A stretch of 63,946 bases of DNA, the filler included, from Reticulomyxa filosa (Eukaryota > Protista > Foraminifera), in assembly GCA_000512085.1 (NCBI GenBank). It is 16 parts of 16 records of this genome, joined end to end, with 100 filler letters (N's around TTAATTAATTAA, not from the genome) between each part and the next. Parts side by side here need not be neighbours in the genome. Positions count along the whole stretch, not along the records: positions 18,838 to 22,890 come from ASPP01045651.1; 15 more parts are not named here. One strand, written 5' to 3'. The notes beneath the pieces were generated by a model. The model saw only the letters and a list, made by a program, of their open reading frames with translations. It did not search any database and was not told where the DNA came from. Made by a program: the position numbers and the translations under genes. Shown here one piece after another: positions 1,116 through 22,890 of this stretch (its first letter is position 1; every line of letters starts with the position of its first letter).

Positions 1116-2334
1116 ACCTTAACCTCTATGTGCCCAATGTCGACACGTTTTTCAGGGCAACAATCGCTGTTCAAAATTCGTCTCTCTCCTTTTTTTTTTT
1201 TTTTGCCTTGTTTCTTGTCATATCTTTACTGTTCGTGTGCATGTGAAAAACTCTCTTTGCTTTTGCTAGTAAAAATTGCTTCAAAACAGCTGCAACTTTT
1301 TGGAATGCAGGCAAGTTTTTAAGTGGAGCACACACTCAGATCGGTTATCTTTCAAAGTTTGTAAATTGTTTATCCTTTTGGTCTTGTTTGACCATAAGTA
1401 ATAGCGCAATATCATCTCAACTTGAAACAAACACTTTTGTAAGACATAATTTATCCATCATGAAAGTTTCTTCGTCTTCTAAAACTCTTTAACAAAAAAA
1501 AAGAACAAATCAATCTAACATTTTCAACAGTAGCTTTTCCATTGTCCATTATAGTAAAAAGTTTTCCAAGTTGAACCAAAAAAGTCCGTACAGTTGCTGT
1601 AAAAAAACAAATTTGAAACAATGGATTAACTGAAACAGAAATTTGAACGTGATTACTGTGCCTTGAAGACTATTACATATCTAAAGAATCAAATTTTCAA
1701 TTTGTAAAACAATATTTCTCAAAGGTATAAAAAAAGTGATAATACTAAACAAACTGAATTTTTATGAATTAAATTCCACATTTGATATCGATATCTAACA
1801 CAAATGATTTTTACTAATTTTCGTTACATTTTTGATATAAATTTGATCAACGAGTTTGATAAATTTTGAAAAAAAAAAGTGTTATTCATGTGATTGAATT
1901 AGTACATATAATTAAATTTTAAAACTGTTTTTATATATTGAAAATATCTCCAATTGTTGTCCAAGTCAATGTCATTATATTCATTTAATTTTTTTTTCAT
2001 TTGATCATCAACAGAAAAAGATTAAAAATATATACTATTTTCATTTTACGTGAACAGCACTTCTTTTTTTTAAAGATGAAAGAAATTTGTAAAAAATAAA
2101 TTTTTAGTTTGTGATAATGGCTTTTGGATGACAGAATAATACACACAATAAAATCTTTGTGTTTATTTTGTTTACTGGACAAAAAAAAAATTATTATAAC
2201 ATTTTTCAATAATAAAACACATTTGTAATAAATTTGCAAAGTTGTAGCATAGCAAACAAACATGACAACTCAACGACAAGTCGTGACAAGGTTAGAAAGG
2301 GACGAAACAGTGAAAAAAAAATCATAAATACTTA

Positions 2335-3127
2335 ATGACCCAATTTTTAGCCTTTTCAACAATTCATGGTCTAGAAAAAGAATGTTTAGGAGAAGTGAAA
2401 GAACTATTGCACGAATATTTGAAAAAAGAGAAAATAGAATTGGATTTTTTGAAAGCTGTTTCTGACAAGGAGTACCTATCAACACGACGTGGTTACGTGG
2501 TATTGGAATGTCCGTCACAGTATTTGAACATGTCTCTGTTCGGAGCATTGACAAAGTTGAAGTCAGTGCAGCGAATAATATACTTAGTGGGCGAGTTTGT
2601 AAAGCTTCCAATGGATGACACAATGTTGTCGTATCTGCAAACGGAAATAACATCAAACAAAGAAACGAATAAAAAGTGGCAGCAAGGACACGACTATTGG
2701 AAGTCGATGTGTTTAGCAACAAGTTTGAATTATTTGGAAAACGACAGCGTCGACCATCGATTCAAATCGAGTTATATCAGATATATAGAGGCTAATAAAG
2801 GAACGGACGAGTCAAAGACGGACAAGCAATCGATACCAATCCGCGAATTGAATGTCGATGAGCCCACGTATCGGATTACATGCGATCGTATTGGCAGCCA
2901 CGTCCAAAAGACAGACATTTTGGAGCCACAACTGGCACACGTCATTCACACACAATTTCCAACGTGGCAAGTGAAATTAAGCTATCCTGATATCCATATT
3001 TATTTTGATTTATTTCATGAACAATGTTTGTTTGGAATTATTCTTCGAGATGGTTTGATTATTTTTTTTTTTTTTTTTGAAAATAAACAAATAAATTTTT
3101 TAAAAAAAAATATATACATATATGTAC

Positions 3128-3160
<33 letters not shown>

Positions 3161-4168
3161 CAAAGGGATGCATCGACGCAATCGTCGCAATTTGCAACAC
3201 CACTTTCAAACGGCATTGAATCCATGCTTGTGTTATTTGCTGGCACGTATTGCTGATATTAAGCCTCACATGTATGTGTGTGACCCAATGTGTGGGATTG
3301 GTAGCATCCTCATTGAGTCGTTCTTGTCCTATCCTCACGCCACTTATATCGGAACAGATTGGAAGTTTAAACCTGTCCAAGAGGCAATTTGCAATACAAA
3401 ATATTGCAATATCCCATTATTAAACACTAGTGACCTGAAGTTTTCAATATACAATTTTTCATTTGTTCAAAAAAAAAAAAAAACAAAAAAAAAAACACAA
3501 ATGGAGAGATGAAACATGTGGCATAGAGAAGACAACATAAATGACGAACAAAAGTATGGAATATGTTTCACAACTGTCGATGTTACCACCATTTATCCTC
3601 CTCAATGCAATAGCATTTACTCCAAGCTGAAAAATAAAATTGATGTTGTCATCACTGACCCTCCTTTTGGACATAAACATGGAACCTATCAAAATAATCG
3701 AGAACATTTGTATCCCAAGATGATCAAATCCTTGATGTCTTTGATCAAGCCCGTTACGGGCAAATTATTGATGGTATTGAACAAAGTTCTATACAACTAT
3801 GTCATTTCATTTTTTTTTATTTGTTTATTTTTTTTTTTTTTTTCATATAGGCAACAATGGAAAGAAAATTAGTCAAAGAATTATTACAGCAAATGTACGG
3901 AGACGAGGGGTGCAAGTACGAGACAAAAGAAGTCGACATTGGGGGATTTAATGCATTATTGTTTATTATCCAAAAACTTAAAGTGGAAGAAGACACTATT
4001 GAAAAGGACACACACGCTCCAAAAAAGAAAGAAAAGAAAGAAAAGAAAAAAACAGGTAAGAAATCGACCGGAAACACATCTCACGCAAGCAATAAAATTA
4101 TTGCTATTACACTTTTAGTTTTGGTGTTAGGATTAGTGGCCAAATTGCTGTTGAACAGCTTTTGGTAG
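2335..4168 (+). CDS. THUMP-domain RNA (guanine-N2) methyltransferase, THUMPD2/3-like, 4 exons
   Basis: N-terminal HGLEKECLGEV, THUMP segment TYRITCDRIG...WQVKLSYPD, SAM-binding CDPMCGIGSILIE and DVVITDPPFG. GT-AG intron 3053-3165 joins RDG to MHRRN in frame; further introns at about 3430-3528 and 3786-3850. Confidence 0.88.
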
Positions 4169-4599
4169 AGTGTTTTTTTTTTTTGTCATCTTCACTCGTT
4201 TGCCTATCCTATGCTATCCTTGTTTTGTTACTTGAACTAATAAATTTTTTAAAAATCTGTACCAAACGGTCATCGAGAGGTACAAACAATCAACACTAAG
4301 TATCATTAGTCGTTCTGAGAAAGAAAAACATTCATACTTTCGTTAATGTTCTTCTTCTCCAAAGTAAGCAAGCAAAATCATAGTAAACAGCTCGATTGGG
4401 TATGTAACCAATTGTAAATGCGGTCATGTCAGTTGCAGAATATAATGCTCTGATTTGTAATTTTGAAATTTTTTGTAGGAATTGACTTACATTGATTGTT
4501 GTACAAAGAGAATTTTTTTGTTAAACATGGCTCATTCCAAAAAATGACATAGACAAAACAACAGTATGACAAAACTAACAAAAAAAAAAAAGGTGGAGA

Positions 4600-6779
4600 C
4601 TATAACAAACTGTTGCTTAACTTTTTCTTTTCTTTCAATTTCATAAGTTCTGCTTGTAGCTCGGGTGGTAATTGATTTTCAACATATTTTTTGTTTTCCT
4701 TGTAACATTTGTCACAAACGCGTTGCGGCTTCGTATATCCCAAGTGTGTCAGTGGCAATTTGCTAGACGAGCATTTCTTACAAAACACCTGTTCACAATT
4801 CTTGCATGTGTGACGGGTCCTCCAAAATGTGAAAGGTAGCTGGCAGTCAGTGCAAGTCATCGCATCGACGGCGGGTGTTTCTACTTGAGTAAGACTTTGA
4901 GCATCGGCCATGCGAGTGTTCAAATCCTCAAGCTCGTCGTATTGCAAAAAGAAGTCACTGAAAATGGGTTGCAAACTGGTAGGAGTTAGGACAAGCTCCA
5001 AAAACTATGATGATCATTTTTTTTTTTTTTTAAAAAAAAAAACCTGATGACAGTTTGGAGGCACAAAATTTTTTTAGTTTGGAGCAAGACTTAATTTACC
5101 TTTTTCGATGAGTCAGGGTTGTATTTCTCGCTTCGTGAAACAGGCCACGACCACAATGACACGCATCTTTCGGGAATACGGTTGTCAACACGTTCTTTTT
5201 CACAATTCAACAAAAAATTTCCAAACCAATGAGACTGGTGATGGTCCGCTAATCGAATTAAAAAGGAAGAATCAAACTCAAATTCTTCGGGATATTGTTG
5301 CATGATATGCCAAACACACTCCAAAAATTGGAAAAAAATGGGTGATCTTTCGTCAGGTTTTTGTGTGGTCCCATTTCTGTCCATGAACTTGTATCCAAAA
5401 GCGGTCCACTCCTTTTCGATAATCATTATGAACCCGCGAATAGTACGACAGAAAGGATCGATCAGAATTTGTGCCAATGAAGACAGCTGTGAAGTGCGAT
5501 CCCAGCCGTCGGAGCAATGGACAACAGCTGCCAAATTGTCCTATGTTGTGTGTTTTGAAACAGAGCCATTTCCCCCACACAAATATATATGTACATATAC
5601 GTATGTGTGTATATACATCATATATACAGATATGCTCAAATACGTAACAAATGTTAAAAAAATTAAACTGTCAACACAATTCGGCGTGCAATAAGAGAGG
5701 CACCGCTAAGCACTTTCCGAATGTACGACGGCCACATGGTTTTGGAAATGGCAGTGGTCCAATCAACCTCGGTGACAGCAGGACTGGTGACGACTCGACA
5801 AAGCTCGTCAAAGGATTTCCTCATGGCATGAATATTGTCGATATCTAAGAAGACTACTTTTGACTTTGTGTACCAACTGGAAGATTCAGTGCCATGTCCC
5901 TTTAGTTTGAAGAACAGAGAGAGAGACGTATAAACAATGGCATACATTATACACACGTATACATATATACATATATACATATATATATATATAGTATAAA
6001 TTTTTTTTTAATTTAAAAAAAAAAAACTCGGAGTCTATTGGCATGAGCAGCAGCCTCGCTTCTGGCGTCGAAAAAGACCAACTCCGCATTGGCTCCGCAT
6101 GTGACACGTATAACTTCAAAGTACTCTTTGTCGGCGTTGGAGTCTTTGTCGAAGACGCCGCGATTGGGCTGAGCGCAGCGCACCATGGTATTGCGCGACG
6201 GTTCGTGGAAGTAGGTCAAGACGGGGAGTCTGCCTTTGCTGCGGAACTTGGAGGCTTTTTTGACGAGCTCGTCGGACACGCTGGTGGGGACGTAGAAGAT
6301 GCAGGGATAGCTCGGACAGACGTCGTAGTTGGAGTTGCAAGTGGAGGGCCTCCACTTCATGGCGGGGACCTTTTGGCGTTGGAACTCTTCGTCCCAGTCG
6401 AACACGTCCCAGCAAGCATTGGGATACGACGTATGTCCGCGGACGTCAGTTTGCAAAGTGGAGTGGCGATACGCAAGGGCGAGATCGAACGTGATGGGAT
6501 CATTGATTACGTGATCGTTCAGACGTTTGTACAGCTCGAGCAAAAAGGTGCTCTTTTGAGTAAACTCCTCGTCAAACACCTGGCCCTCGTTGGGCGTGTT
6601 CGTGTATTCATTCTTGTTGTGTGGCTTTGCTACGCGCTTCTTCTTCGAATACAGCTTGAAAAACGACTTCTTTTCTTTACTGCTATCAAACGTCGCATAC
6701 GTCTCCGACTCGCTTGGCGTCTCGGCGGTGATCATGGCCGTGGCCATGGCCATAGCCGTAGCCGTAGCCGTAGCCGTAG
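4600..6779 (-). CDS. Myotubularin-family phosphoinositide phosphatase with C-terminal FYVE-like finger, 5' truncated
   Basis: Catalytic VVHCSDGWDRT; conserved FRSKGRLPVL, RCAQP, DARS, IDNIHAMRKS, IEKEWTAFG, ERSPIFFQFL. Last exon has an 8-Cys-type FYVE pattern ending RVCDKC. Confidence 0.95.
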
Positions 6780-18837: not shown

Positions 18838-19750
18838 ATCGTCGACAAAGATACAATAACAACTGTTGGGCCACCAAGCAAAAGCTATTCCTTCCATTCC
18901 GTGTTTCGCGAGCATGCATCTAATGAACTGTGTAATACCATTATCGACCAAATGTTGCATAACGTCATCATGGGATTCAACGCTGTGTTGTTTGCCTATG
19001 GTCAAACAGTGAGCGGAAAGACATTTTCAATTATTGGCAATCAACAACAAACGGAAATCGGAATGCTGCCCCACATGTTGCGCTCAGCGTTGGACAAGCC
19101 GGGTATCTCACGAGTATCCCTCTCCGCAGTAGAAGTATTAGGACAAATCGTCACTAGTATTGAATTTTTCGACTTGTTGGATCAGCGCAATCAAAATTCG
19201 GATTGGTCGAAGAAAATCGGATCAACCACAATTAACATTGATAAGCTCAATCAAACCGTTATCCAAAACCCGGAAGACGCATACACAATTGTCCAAACCG
19301 CACGTCAGGCTTCACAAGTCGCACCAACAGGTAAAAATCCAGATTCCTCGCGTGGACGTGTCGTTTTTTTGTCTCAATTACAACCTCCAGCCCAAACGAA
19401 CGTACAGAATCAACAAAGTCCTTCATCGTGGTGGATTGCGCCGGAAGTGAGGGAGACAGTGCACTCGGCGATGACTTCGCTCATTCAACCGACAAGAAAA
19501 TATTACATTGTAGAAGACGGGAAGCAGGATGCATCAATACAGGTTTGTCGCAATTACAAATCATGTTCAAGAACTGCGTGAACAAGGAAAACTAACACAG
19601 GCAAAGGGCGATGGATTACGTAAGTTTTTGCACTAATTCGTTAACGCACATACACAAATATCCTTCTTGTTTACATTATCGCCGGCCGCAATCAACGCCA
19701 AAGCATCGGAAGCTACGTTAAAATTTGCAGACAATGCAGGAGCGATTTAA
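18838..19750 (+). pseudogene. Intronless kinesin motor domain, disrupted (2 frameshifts, 2 stops), 5' truncated by contig end
   Basis: GFNAVLFAYGQTVSGKT (P-loop, 19000-19023), NPDSSRG (switch I, from 19336), VVDCAGSE (switch II, from 19434, frame 3), REAGCINTGLSQL, LFTLSPAAINAKASEATLKFA (frame 2). Confidence 0.92.
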
Positions 19751-19938
19751 GTTCAACTAATACAGGTCCCTTCATCAATTAGAAAACAAATCCCATCCGG
19801 TCGTACGCAAACCAATCAGCGACAAGAAGTCCATGAACATAAAACGCACATATACCCGGTAGAACAAACAAAATTTGACATCCCCACAGGCAAACAAACA
19901 ATTGGTAAAAACAGTGTACGTAGTCATGTCCCAGCTGA

Positions 19939-22890
19939 CACAGCAGATCAACAGTTTCAGGCACAAGATATTTCGTCGCATCCGGCCCACGGATTCGAAA
20001 ACAGCGAGAGGAATTAAATTATCCGAAAGCGCAAATCCCGACAACAAACGAACTATTCTCCTCCACGTTCGACATAGATGAAGATGCCAATCCAATTTCA
20101 GTTCAACAATGCAAGACAGTTCCAGCACAGTCACGTAAGATCCATCCTGATTACGACAAAGATTTTTACTCGTGCACTGTTCCTCATTGCCCGCAGCAAG
20201 GGGTACGTTGGTCCGTCGTAGAAAGTCTTCACACACACATGAATCAACACGCGCAAAAGAACATCGCAGGCGAAGTTCATGTCGATTATATGCAGTCATT
20301 CTCCAGAATTATTTGTGTAAGCTGCCGAACAACAGTTTCAGTCGCACACGCAAGAAACGGAATGCACAAAAGATGTCAGAACGCTCAAAAGTTCTTCCAG
20401 CAATCGCAACTAGTCTCCAATCATACTCAACAGAACTTACAAATGGCTGGCACTCATTGGATCCTTCATTCACCAACAGCAATTGCAGTCTGTCCTGTGA
20501 GATTGATACCTCGAGTTCCAAAATGCTTACGAGCAGACGTTGCAGCGTGTGCGTCACATTGTCTCCAAGACATTAATACATACAATAGCGTCGCATGGAG
20601 TCACTGGGCTATGTTCACCAGAGTCATTTTGTGGAAACCAAGCAGGGGAAGCCCCAAAACCAACCGAATGATTACGTTGATTCGGGATAGAATTCGTCGT
20701 TGGAAGCAAAAAGACCTCCAGTCATTATGGAACGAGTTTATAGATCATTCCCGAGAGATTTCGTCCCACTCGTTAAAACCCGCACGAGCTCCCACCAAAT
20801 CCGACAAACTTCGATCATGTCGCAATTTTGCAGCATTGGGTGAGTACTCCAACGCTTTTTGAGCGCTTCACTCCCAAGGACGATCGACATACGACAAGTG
20901 CACAATAGATGAACTTAAAGCGAAACATCCAAGCGAGGAAGAACCAAAGATCGATTTAGAGTCACCACCAAGAAACCCATTTACGAAGGAAGAAGTAATT
21001 GCATACGCACAGAAGTTAAGTCGTTCTTCGTCCGGTGGTCCTGAATTTTTCTCAGCGCAATACCTCCTGGATATGATCCCCTTTGAAGTGGAATCGGGTG
21101 TTGTGAGTCAATGGACACAAGTGGCACAACTCATTGGTGAAGACGAAGTAAATGTGGAGGTTGCTGCAATCGCATATGTGGCTCGATTGATCGCCATTCC
21201 AAAACCAGACGGATCTCCTAGGCCGATAGTAATTGTATGTTTACTTCAACGTACGGCAGCAGCAATCCCTCCACAAGGCACAAACACGAAATACAACAAG
21301 CGGTGGTTGCGAAACAGTTTGGAATCAACGTCCCTTCAGGCGTGGAAGTATTCGTACATGGATTCAAAGCGGCTGTCCAATGGGCAAGCAAGGACAAAAA
21401 CTGAGTCGCAGTCAAAGTCGATTTCAAAAACGCTTTCAATATTATACGTCGTAAAAAACTATTGGAATTAGTCGGTTCGAGTCTACAATCATTATTCAAG
21501 TATGTTCATGGTTGCTATGGAAAACATTCGTCACTGTTTCTGCCAACTGGTGAAACCATTCCATCATGTACTGGCATACAACAAGGAGATCCACTCAGTG
21601 GATCCCTATTCGCAATAGTCTTGGCTGATGCCTTGGAAAATTCTTTTCATAATCACGCGTGCTATTGGGCAGCGTACCACGACGGTTTGACAATGGCAGG
21701 TACAATTGATTCTGTCTCTTCAGCATTGGCATCCATGAGAAACCTTGGCGAATCCCATGGATTGTTGGTAAATTTGTCAAAAAAGTGAGTGGCTGTCGTT
21801 AACCCCTCCAACAGATAGGTCATTGCTATTCTTTTACAACAACACTGGCAAGTATTGCTATTGGGACACCAACTGATGTAGATGCTGTTATGGAACAAAA
21901 AGTGACTAATTTAGATTCCACATTCGATACTATCGTGCAATTGGATCATCTACAGACATCGTTATTGCTTCTGCGTCATTGCAGGCATTTATCCAAAATC
22001 AACTATTTTCTTCGTGTTAACTTTACATCTTCAACTTGCAAATGGGCCAAACAGTTTGACCATTCAATCCGACTATGCATTGAGCGGCTTCTAGGCAGAT
22101 CTCTTTCTGATATTCAATGGAGATAATGTCAATTACCAATTCGGTGGGGTGGATTAAACCTGAGCACAATCAACAATTATTCAAGCGCAGCATTTATTAC
22201 ATCCGCAGCAACGGCATTTGACATGTTATCGAAGGTTTATCAGCACAGCATCCCTTTAGAATTGATATCACAAGATGAAATTGATTCCACAGTATACAAT
22301 TACAATACAAGAGTTCCTGTAACACAACAAATATCAAATTGGACAAATATTACATCTCAGTCATCACTTGCAAATTTCATATCAGTGCAATCTCTTCATT
22401 CGCCCCAAGCGTCAGCAGATGAACGTACCAATTCAATGCTTACTGCTTTGTCAATCAATCAAGCTTCAGCATTCCTCCATGCCAAGCCAAATCGTTTTGC
22501 GCGTACGTACTTCGAAAATAAAGAACTCAAAGCGGTTTTATACATGCGTCTAGGTCTCACTTTCAACTGATAATAAATACCATGGTGATCATCGTTGCAA
22601 AGTAGAAATGGATCCCTATGGAGATTATGGGTTAGCGTGCCCGTTCGGCTGAGGTCGCATTGCAAGACACGATGGAGTTGTCAGTGCAATTTCGTATTTA
22701 TTATCAAGAGCAGGATTGCAACATCAAAGGGAATGCCGTGACGGCTTTAACGGAAATGAAAGACCTGGTGACATTGGACTCAAATGGTTTGGAAGTGTAC
22801 GTTATATGACATTGTTCGACTTTGGAGTTACACACAGTTGGAAGCAACGACAAGGGCGTTATACAAGATTGAAAGCGGCAGACACTTTCT
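19939..22890 (+). mobile_element. Degraded CRE-clade-like non-LTR retrotransposon ORF (C2H2 zinc finger - RT - CCHC - restriction-like endonuclease), 3' truncated
   Basis: CTVPHC-x15-H-x3-H (20173-20250); LKAKHP; SSGGP; LIAIPKPDGSPRPI; QFGI; VDFKNAFN; GIQQGDPL (QQ from 21579); YHDG for Y(L)DD (21675); GLLVNLSK; LPIRWGGL; GDYGLAC...RHD; RPGDI...FDFGVTH. Multiple stops and frameshifts. Confidence 0.92.

Follow-up and report, generated by a model that had tools for sequence, protein, structure and literature searches.

A kinesin-like motor in the reconstructed reading frame of a non-LTR retrotransposon family from the foraminiferan Reticulomyxa filosa

Positions 18838-22890 of the window, by which we mean the whole joined stretch of 63,946 nucleotides analysed here from Reticulomyxa filosa (assembly GCA_000512085.1), come from record ASPP01045651.1 and contain, in this order and all in a decayed state, a kinesin motor that covers Pfam positions 36-327, followed by a linker, zinc-binding motifs, a reverse transcriptase (RT) and an R2-like endonuclease. 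We consider it very probable that this sequence, the focal copy, is a dead copy of a multi-copy non-long-terminal-repeat (non-LTR) retrotransposon whose ancestor carried a kinesin-like motor within its single open reading frame (ORF). Comparison of the copies and of related proteins indicates that the kinesin belongs to the retroelement lineage as an integral component, old and under selection, and is neither a neighbour nor a one-off chimera. The ancestor would have had one ORF of about 1580 codons, encoding a short Cys-rich N-terminus, the kinesin-like motor, a low-complexity linker, two zinc-binding motifs, the RT and, finally, a Cys/His motif with the endonuclease. An ancestral ORF of the order kinesin, linker, zinc finger, RT and restriction-like endonuclease (RLE) had been suggested in a preliminary description of this DNA, and it is borne out by the consensus of the copies, by selection and by natural ORFs on two further contigs (L007 and L008). 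Coordinates such as 19748 are positions in the joined stretch; L001-L008 and P00xx are our working labels for other contigs and for proteins, respectively.

Structure of the focal copy

The focal copy occupies its entire 4053-bp contig, with the kinesin severed at one edge and the endonuclease at the other. Its features are the following:

18838-19747, + strand: kinesin-like motor domain (Pfam PF00225), cut by the contig edge, spread over three frames by 1-nt deletions near 19370 and 19568, with an internal TAA at 19634
19748-19750, + strand: TAA closing the kinesin frame in the focal copy only; CAA in L001, L003, L004 and L005
19751-20172, + strand: linker from motor to zinc finger; a private 1-nt deletion near 20001 shifts the frame, the base being present in L001 and L005
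20173-20376, + strand: two zinc-binding motifs read from the translation, C-x4-C-x15-H-x3-H (20173-20250) and C-x2-C-x13-H-x2-C (20314-20376)
20377-21219, + strand: conserved pre-RT region with a TGA at 20860; 93% identity to L002 and 91.5% to L005, alignable with the pre-RT region of P0009 and P0014
21220-21800, + strand: reverse transcriptase, with a 1-nt deletion at 21268, a TGA at 21402 and a 1-nt insertion at 21779
21801-22553, + strand: post-RT region, which has lost 14 nt near 21818 and contains a TAA at 22124; aligned with L005 and homologous to P0009 and L008
22554-22889, + strand: Cys/His motif and restriction-like endonuclease, with a 2-nt deletion at its start (22557) and a TGA at 22650, cut by the contig edge

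The first part of the motor (18838-19578) matches PF00225 with an E value of 1.2e-25 over profile positions 36-220, while the last part (19637-19747) covers positions 295-327 of 327, that is, up to the exact end of the domain, in a match that is weak alone (E 0.23). The domain therefore finishes at 19747, with the residues FADNAGAI directly before the TAA at 19748-19750, as the preliminary description proposed. Its other statements on the frames were also accurate: past this stop the kinesin frame has 88 open codons (19751-20014), which overlap a second frame open from 19939 to 20859 (stop codon at 20860-20862), and the first ATG of this second frame, at 20239, is not upstream of the CTVPHC...H-x3-H motif (20173-20250). 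GC content is even across the focal copy (0.38-0.47), to be compared with about 0.23-0.28 in the AT-rich flanks of other copies. Both halves had been described as decayed and, relative to the other copies, we count seven frameshifting indels and six in-frame stops distributed over both, of which four indels and four stops lie in the RT half. It had further been claimed that one stop and one frameshift separate the motor from the RT ORF; this is true, and both are private to the focal copy, but the kinesin itself has two additional 1-nt deletions and an internal TAA.

Both zinc-binding motifs are conserved in the related families P0009, P0014 and P0015. The C2H2 finger gives only sub-threshold Pfam matches. 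The RT is recognised by the RVT_1 model at 21405-21785 (E 6e-10; 6.7e-21 for the intact piece of L005), and its YxDD box reads YHDG in the focal copy and YHDD in L005. The endonuclease-like motif RHD...RPGD...D-x-G-V-T lies at 22653-22889, and alignment of this region shows conservation of RH(D/N), E, RP-x-D and D-x-G-(V/I)-T.

Other copies and the ancestral reading frame

Copies were located by protein searches with linker/finger, kinesin and RT pieces, and the contigs were then compared by BLASTN. In R. filosa, where annotated proteins were searched, the focal family comprises at least six contigs overall, five of which bear the kinesin. L005 (ASPP01023056.1) aligns to 18839-22890 at 91.5% and extends beyond the end of the focal copy to the ORF stop; L001 (ASPP01004819.1) aligns to 18841-21101 at 89%, with an identical order of kinesin, linker, finger and RT; L004 (ASPP01018948.1) aligns to 18959-19987, up to its contig end, and spans the kinesin-linker junction; L003 (ASPP01035467.1) aligns to 18838-19762 at 96.9%, its motor being complete and in one frame that only two stops interrupt; and L002 is a short contig with RT only, 93% identical to the focal copy. 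The junction is, consequently, also crossed by L001, L004 and L005 (89-91% identity), two of which have other 5′ flanks, and L001 and L005 run on beyond it into the zinc finger and RT. A common junction with different flanks was one of the expectations of the preliminary description, which also considered that copies of the RT family might begin, without kinesin, near 19940-20170; none of L001, L004 and L005 starts there.

The interruptions at the junction are not ancestral. Position 19748 is T in the focal copy and C in L001, L003, L004 and L005, where the codon is CAA (Gln), so the consensus does not keep this stop. Similarly, neither L001 nor L005 has the 1-nt deletion near 20001, and the residues flanking it lie in one frame in L001, which also has a natural frame of 162 codons (L001:7878-8363) running from switch II through the motor end into the linker. 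Across all copies, every frameshift is private to a single copy, as are most of the stops. A consensus built as the plain majority of the six copies, with long deletions counted as missing, reads from an ATG as a single frame of 1584 codons, free of frameshifts but with five residual stops, all of them where coverage is at most four copies and three where it is only one or two. About 120 residues ahead of the motor (L003:565-915) include a Cys-rich motif with a sub-threshold match to the ZZ zinc finger (Pfam, E 0.056).

The family has traits of a multi-copy element: six contigs at different loci, a common 5′ end, a 5′-truncated copy and private lesions. The common 5′ end is seen where L001 position 6757 corresponds to L003 position 421, with unrelated DNA upstream in each. 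The L004 copy begins abruptly within the kinesin (18959) beside unrelated AT-rich DNA, a pattern that identifies it as 5′-truncated; a phosphoribosyltransferase gene lies about 2.5 kb upstream on the same contig. We considered L003 as the progenitor kinesin gene and rejected this, as its 96.9% identity to the RT-bearing focal copy makes it nearer to that copy than other RT-bearing copies are, which points to a 3′-deleted copy.

Selection on the motor

Selection was estimated as the ratio of nonsynonymous to synonymous substitution rates (dN/dS; Nei-Gojobori) between copies, using the same columns in the two wrong frames as control and a binomial p value against neutrality. For the kinesin, nine of ten pairs had a dN/dS of 0.19-0.55 (p down to 7e-9), while the wrong frames gave 0.44-3.2. 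The RT gave 0.26-0.39 in frame and 0.6-4.2 in the wrong frames, and the linker 0.12-0.62. The low in-frame values imply that the amino-acid sequence of the kinesin was constrained during the divergence of the source lineages, approximately as strongly as that of the RT. Between the nearest pair, the focal copy and L003 (3% apart), the kinesin dN/dS is 1.3, as expected for decay after insertion.

Related families and age of the architecture

When the intact RT piece of L005 was compared by HMMER with 1.84 billion representative proteins, the best matches were several diverged R. filosa families with 46-66% identity, followed by P0017. At least three of the matched proteins bear a kinesin. P0014 (ETO34218.1, “kinesin family member 4, partial”), which represents a second R. 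filosa family and comes from contig L008 (ASPP01002760.1), matches both Kinesin and RVT_1 in Pfam, and L008 has a single uninterrupted natural frame of 1209 codons that encodes kinesin, linker, C2H2 finger and the start of the RT, after which come one frameshifted stretch and then the endonuclease part, up to a stop. In P0015 (RFI_32957), of a third family, the kinesin ahead of the same finger and RT is degenerate. P0017, from a GC-rich contig (L007) of another organism in the Logan assembly of SRR30503367, is an intact ORF of 1816 codons in which Pfam recognises Kinesin (E 1.3e-26, profile 30-319) and RVT_1, and it shares the C-terminal motifs.

A tree of 52 RT sequences unites the seven R. 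filosa families in a single clade (Shimodaira-Hasegawa-like approximate likelihood ratio test, SH-aLRT, 99). Within it the focal family is sister to the remaining families, the half that includes P0015, whereas P0017 belongs to the next clade out (93). Since kinesin-bearing families lie on both sides of the first split of the R. filosa clade, the kinesin is most simply ancestral to this clade, and the position of P0017 in the tree suggests that it was probably ancestral to the larger clade as well. No kinesin is seen in P0009 or P0011, although these two proteins are cut or begin within a long linker. Identity between lineages is 26-29% for the kinesin and 35-50% for the RT. With P0017 as query, the ESM Atlas search gave no usable match, and a metagenome scan gave only one distant RT.

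On L007, the 3′ untranslated region ends on (CCCTAA)n at the contig end (6884-6907), with no poly(A), and two TTAGGC(TTAGGG)3 blocks in opposite orientation lie upstream, 897 bp apart (L007:164-181 and 1061-1078); this element may be a telomere-associated insertion. Other proteins of the RT group carry other domains ahead of the RT, such as the OTU protease of P0121 (Diplonema) and P0065 (from a genome in ENA), or the serpin and Prim-Pol of further relatives (P0076 and P0094), some of which are perhaps gene-model fusions. P0017 also has an OTU-like DGSCLFGA motif, without a Pfam match.

The motor domain

All the element kinesins pass the curated cut-off of PF00225 (29.3 bits), with 90.6 bits in the focal copy, 106 in L003, 86 in P0014, 94 in P0017 and 31.7 in P0015. 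The family consensus retains the P-loop, switch I and switch II (GQTVSGKT, SSRGH and DCAGS(D/E)), as does the intact P0017 (GSSGSGKT, SSRGH and DLAGSE). Of the four lineages of element kinesins, three have SSRGH at switch I, in place of the SSRSH of kinesins, and P0015 retains only S-GH. The fold predicted for the P0017 motor is that of a full kinesin motor, with a predicted local distance difference test score (pLDDT) of 80 and a predicted template modelling score (pTM) of 0.84, and comparison of this model with kinesin-1, -3, -8 and -14 in Foldseek gives template modelling (TM) scores of 0.70-0.76 (0.73-0.76 for kinesin-1). The Pfam Microtub_bd model also matches the element motors. Regarding the kinesin family to which they belong, sequence and fold matches to kinesin-1, -3, -4, -5, -8 and -14 are all similar. 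The motor is upstream of everything else, as in N-type kinesins.

Element class, ends and flanks

By its RT sequence and the predicted fold of its endonuclease, the element is an RLE-type non-LTR retrotransposon. Among solved structures, the best relatives of the RT by sequence are LINE-1 ORF2p (E 4e-9) and R2 (E 1.8e-6). A search of the endonuclease region against the PDB by sequence found nothing. The AlphaFold2 (AF2) model of the intact homologue in L006, whose pLDDT is only fair (62), has an alpha-beta-beta-beta-alpha-beta core, and the top seven Foldseek matches to this model are R2 proteins with probabilities of 0.91-1.0, the next being at most 0.14. The model thus gives moderate support to a PD-(D/E)xK endonuclease after the Cys/His motif; no Pfam match to an apurinic/apyrimidinic (AP) endonuclease was obtained in any element sequence scanned.

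Assignment to the CRE clade is plausible, given the architecture and relatives of about 30% identity that their source names as SLACS-like. The hallmark of CRE elements is site-specific insertion into spliced-leader RNA genes. Rfam detected no RNA genes on the R. filosa contigs L001 and L003-L006, and such an insertion was not seen.

Some of the flanks consist of an AT-rich repeat, which is uninterrupted at L001:10991-11520, with an inverted copy at L001:10243-10439. The left part of this repeat constitutes the 5′ flank of L003 (67-392) and the right part the 3′ flank of L005 (4439-4609), which makes it a candidate for a preferred target, or else for a long target duplication; Rfam detected no RNA gene in it. 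The element copy of L001 itself has a different flank. We initially took the flanks of L003 and L005 as proof of site-specific insertion, and the A18 run that follows the ORF in L005 as a poly(A) tail; both interpretations were downgraded, as the A-run aligns with the flank repeat and, in the case of the flanks, as the L001 copy is flanked differently.

Other neighbouring sequences deserve mention. Past the homology break in L003 there is lower-GC DNA with a short Cys/His-rich open frame (L003:1915-2330, CPIGEHEC...), and the gene model of this contig, RFI_34852, splices around the stops of the element. The L001 copy ends at 21101; beyond it lie about 740 bp of coding-like DNA (L001:9423-10160, GC 0.40), which the gene model RFI_05514 joins to element sequence. 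Upstream of the L001 element are tandem WD40-repeat genes (1312-3442 and 4343-6226) that are about 74% identical, with their downstream regions duplicated too (1102-1479 and 6283-6649).

Alternative explanations

Several observations weigh against our main explanation. L003 has the kinesin and the element 5′ end, but its homology is lost at 19762, 14 nt past the motor end, and alone it resembles a kinesin without RT. This would be expected if a kinesin pseudogene or retrocopy had been joined to a CRE-like element by insertion or by template switching, as a chance juxtaposition or one-off chimera that was never a working gene. We find this hard to credit, because the same junction is present on four independent contigs, its stop and frameshift are private, the high identity of L003 to the RT-bearing focal copy indicates a 3′ deletion and the same architecture occurs in open frames of other families and of another organism. 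Further adverse points concern the state of the family. None of its six contigs holds an intact copy and none holds both element ends, while the A18 run past the L005 ORF aligns with an A-rich stretch of the flank repeat, as do about 40 nt before the run with the repeat. In addition, three TGA stops are each common to two copies, which fits either parallel CpG decay, from CGA to TGA, or a partly dead common source; the sites are focal 20860 and 22650, L001:8681 and L005:1430, 1933 and 3697, and one of them is CGA in other copies. If the fusion were instead a domesticated kinesin-RT gene of the host, duplicated at the DNA level and not mobile, the intact or near-intact ORFs of L007 and L008 would be understandable, as would the lack of a contig showing both element ends with a target-site duplication. 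Nevertheless, all six contigs of the focal family are pseudogenes with private lesions, their flanks differ while their 5′ end is common, one copy is 5′-truncated, the endonuclease domain has been retained and many diverged families coexist in one genome, so a host gene family is highly improbable.

Other alternatives accept a mobile element and differ on what the kinesin does. A host kinesin exon might have been captured once, for instance by 5′ transduction, and carried neutrally as a passenger without any role. The motor motifs are, indeed, partly degenerate, with loop 12 replaced and switch II degenerate or lost in P0014, and the kinesin has evolved faster than the RT (26-29% against 35-50% identity). 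By contrast, neutral carriage is difficult to reconcile with a dN/dS that is similar to that of the RT (0.19-0.55 in frame, about 0.4-3 out of frame), with the conservation of the domain in at least three R. filosa families and P0017 despite RT divergence down to 35% identity, and with a P0017 motor that has all nucleotide-binding motifs and a confidently predicted kinesin fold; we regard a passenger as quite improbable. A domain that is selected without being a motor, acting as a nucleotide-dependent switch, as an ATPase for assembly or remodelling of the ribonucleoprotein (RNP) or as a static anchor to microtubules or the spindle, is a weightier candidate, although we still consider it unlikely. 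The canonical microtubule-binding motif of kinesins in loop-12/alpha-5 is PYRDSKLT, and it is absent in all four element kinesin lineages: the site reads P-A-K-G-D-G-L-R in the focal family and V-K-G-K-G-L-V-R in P0017. With this motif replaced, real motility is uncertain. Moreover, the linker is of low complexity, no coiled-coil neck for dimerisation is evident and, as Foldseek scores are alike for kinesin-1, -3, -8 and -14, the motor is not assigned to a transport family. On the other hand, the whole motor fold is predicted to be kept with its P-loop and both switches, and the Microtub_bd model matches as well.

For the ancestral motor-bearing element, we propose that the protein, like those of other non-LTR elements, would bind the mRNA that encodes it, and that the motor domain would attach the resulting RNP to microtubules and move or anchor it, so that the RNP would be brought to nuclei in the microtubule-filled, multinucleate cell of R. 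filosa. The lack of an evident coiled-coil neck would mean that any movement is produced by monomers or by several copies per RNP. We put forward this mechanism tentatively, as a possibility to be taken seriously. The broader proposal that an old clade, present in a foraminiferan and at least one other eukaryote, encodes its own working motor to carry or anchor the retrotransposition complex is, likewise, possible rather than probable.

Relation to known systems

The element resembles the CRE clade of trypanosomatids (CRE1/2, SLACS and CZAR) in its one ORF, where zinc motifs precede the RT and the C-terminus holds a Cys/His motif with RLE, and some of its RT relatives, in Diplonema, are annotated as “Retrotransposable element SLACS 132 kDa protein”. 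It differs from that clade in its N-terminal kinesin-like motor and long linker, and in having no RNA gene in its flanks according to Rfam. With R2 it shares a single ORF and N-terminal zinc fingers, in addition to the RT similarity and to a C-terminal domain whose model matches R2 first among solved structures. Unlike R2, it has a kinesin and no 28S rDNA context, and its RT is at least as near to LINE-1 ORF2p. The OTU-bearing non-LTR relatives (P0121 and P0065) are also similar in having N-terminal additions upstream of the RT, from which it follows that this RT group tolerates domain gain at that place, but the domain added in R. filosa is a cytoskeletal motor.

The domains that retrotransposons are known to have gained include nucleases, RNase H and proteases, along with a few others. 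In full-text literature searches, we found no paper linking kinesin with non-LTR or RLE retrotransposons, or with an RT domain, and the word kinesin is absent from a 2019 review of retrotransposon accessory domains (PMC6338049). The closest parallels are functional. The meiotic-drive haplotype Ab10 of maize is reported to carry KINDR and TRKIN, separate kinesin-14 genes that act on knob repeats (PMC7462060). There, a selfish system depends on a kinesin of its own to transport DNA-linked cargo along microtubules; the R. filosa motor is, instead, fused to an RT inside a mobile element. Viruses, such as alphaherpesviruses, also illustrate the functional idea of a replicating genetic parasite that uses microtubule transport, and they are reported to recruit host kinesins or dynein (PMC8402756). 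While they rely on host motors through adaptors, the R. filosa element encodes the motor domain in its own polyprotein.

Biological significance

The high number of kinesin genes in R. filosa has been cited as evidence of the importance of this family in Rhizaria (PMC13746701). The preliminary description anticipated that retrotransposition would inflate this number and, in fact, the GenBank entries RFI_34852, “kinesin family member 13A” and “kinesin family member 4” are element-derived. With at least three deposited kinesins being transposon fragments, the kinesin counts of R. filosa need to be checked for element copies. If the working motor is real, part of the reported kinesin expansion of Reticulomyxa would consist of transposon copies, and a cytoskeletal motor built into a mobile element would be known for the first time. 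A selected motor in the only ORF of the element suggests that transport along, or anchoring to, microtubules can limit retrotransposition. Such a limit would suit a giant cell with many nuclei and with microtubules as its main routes of traffic. The intact ORF of P0017 makes this idea directly testable by expression.

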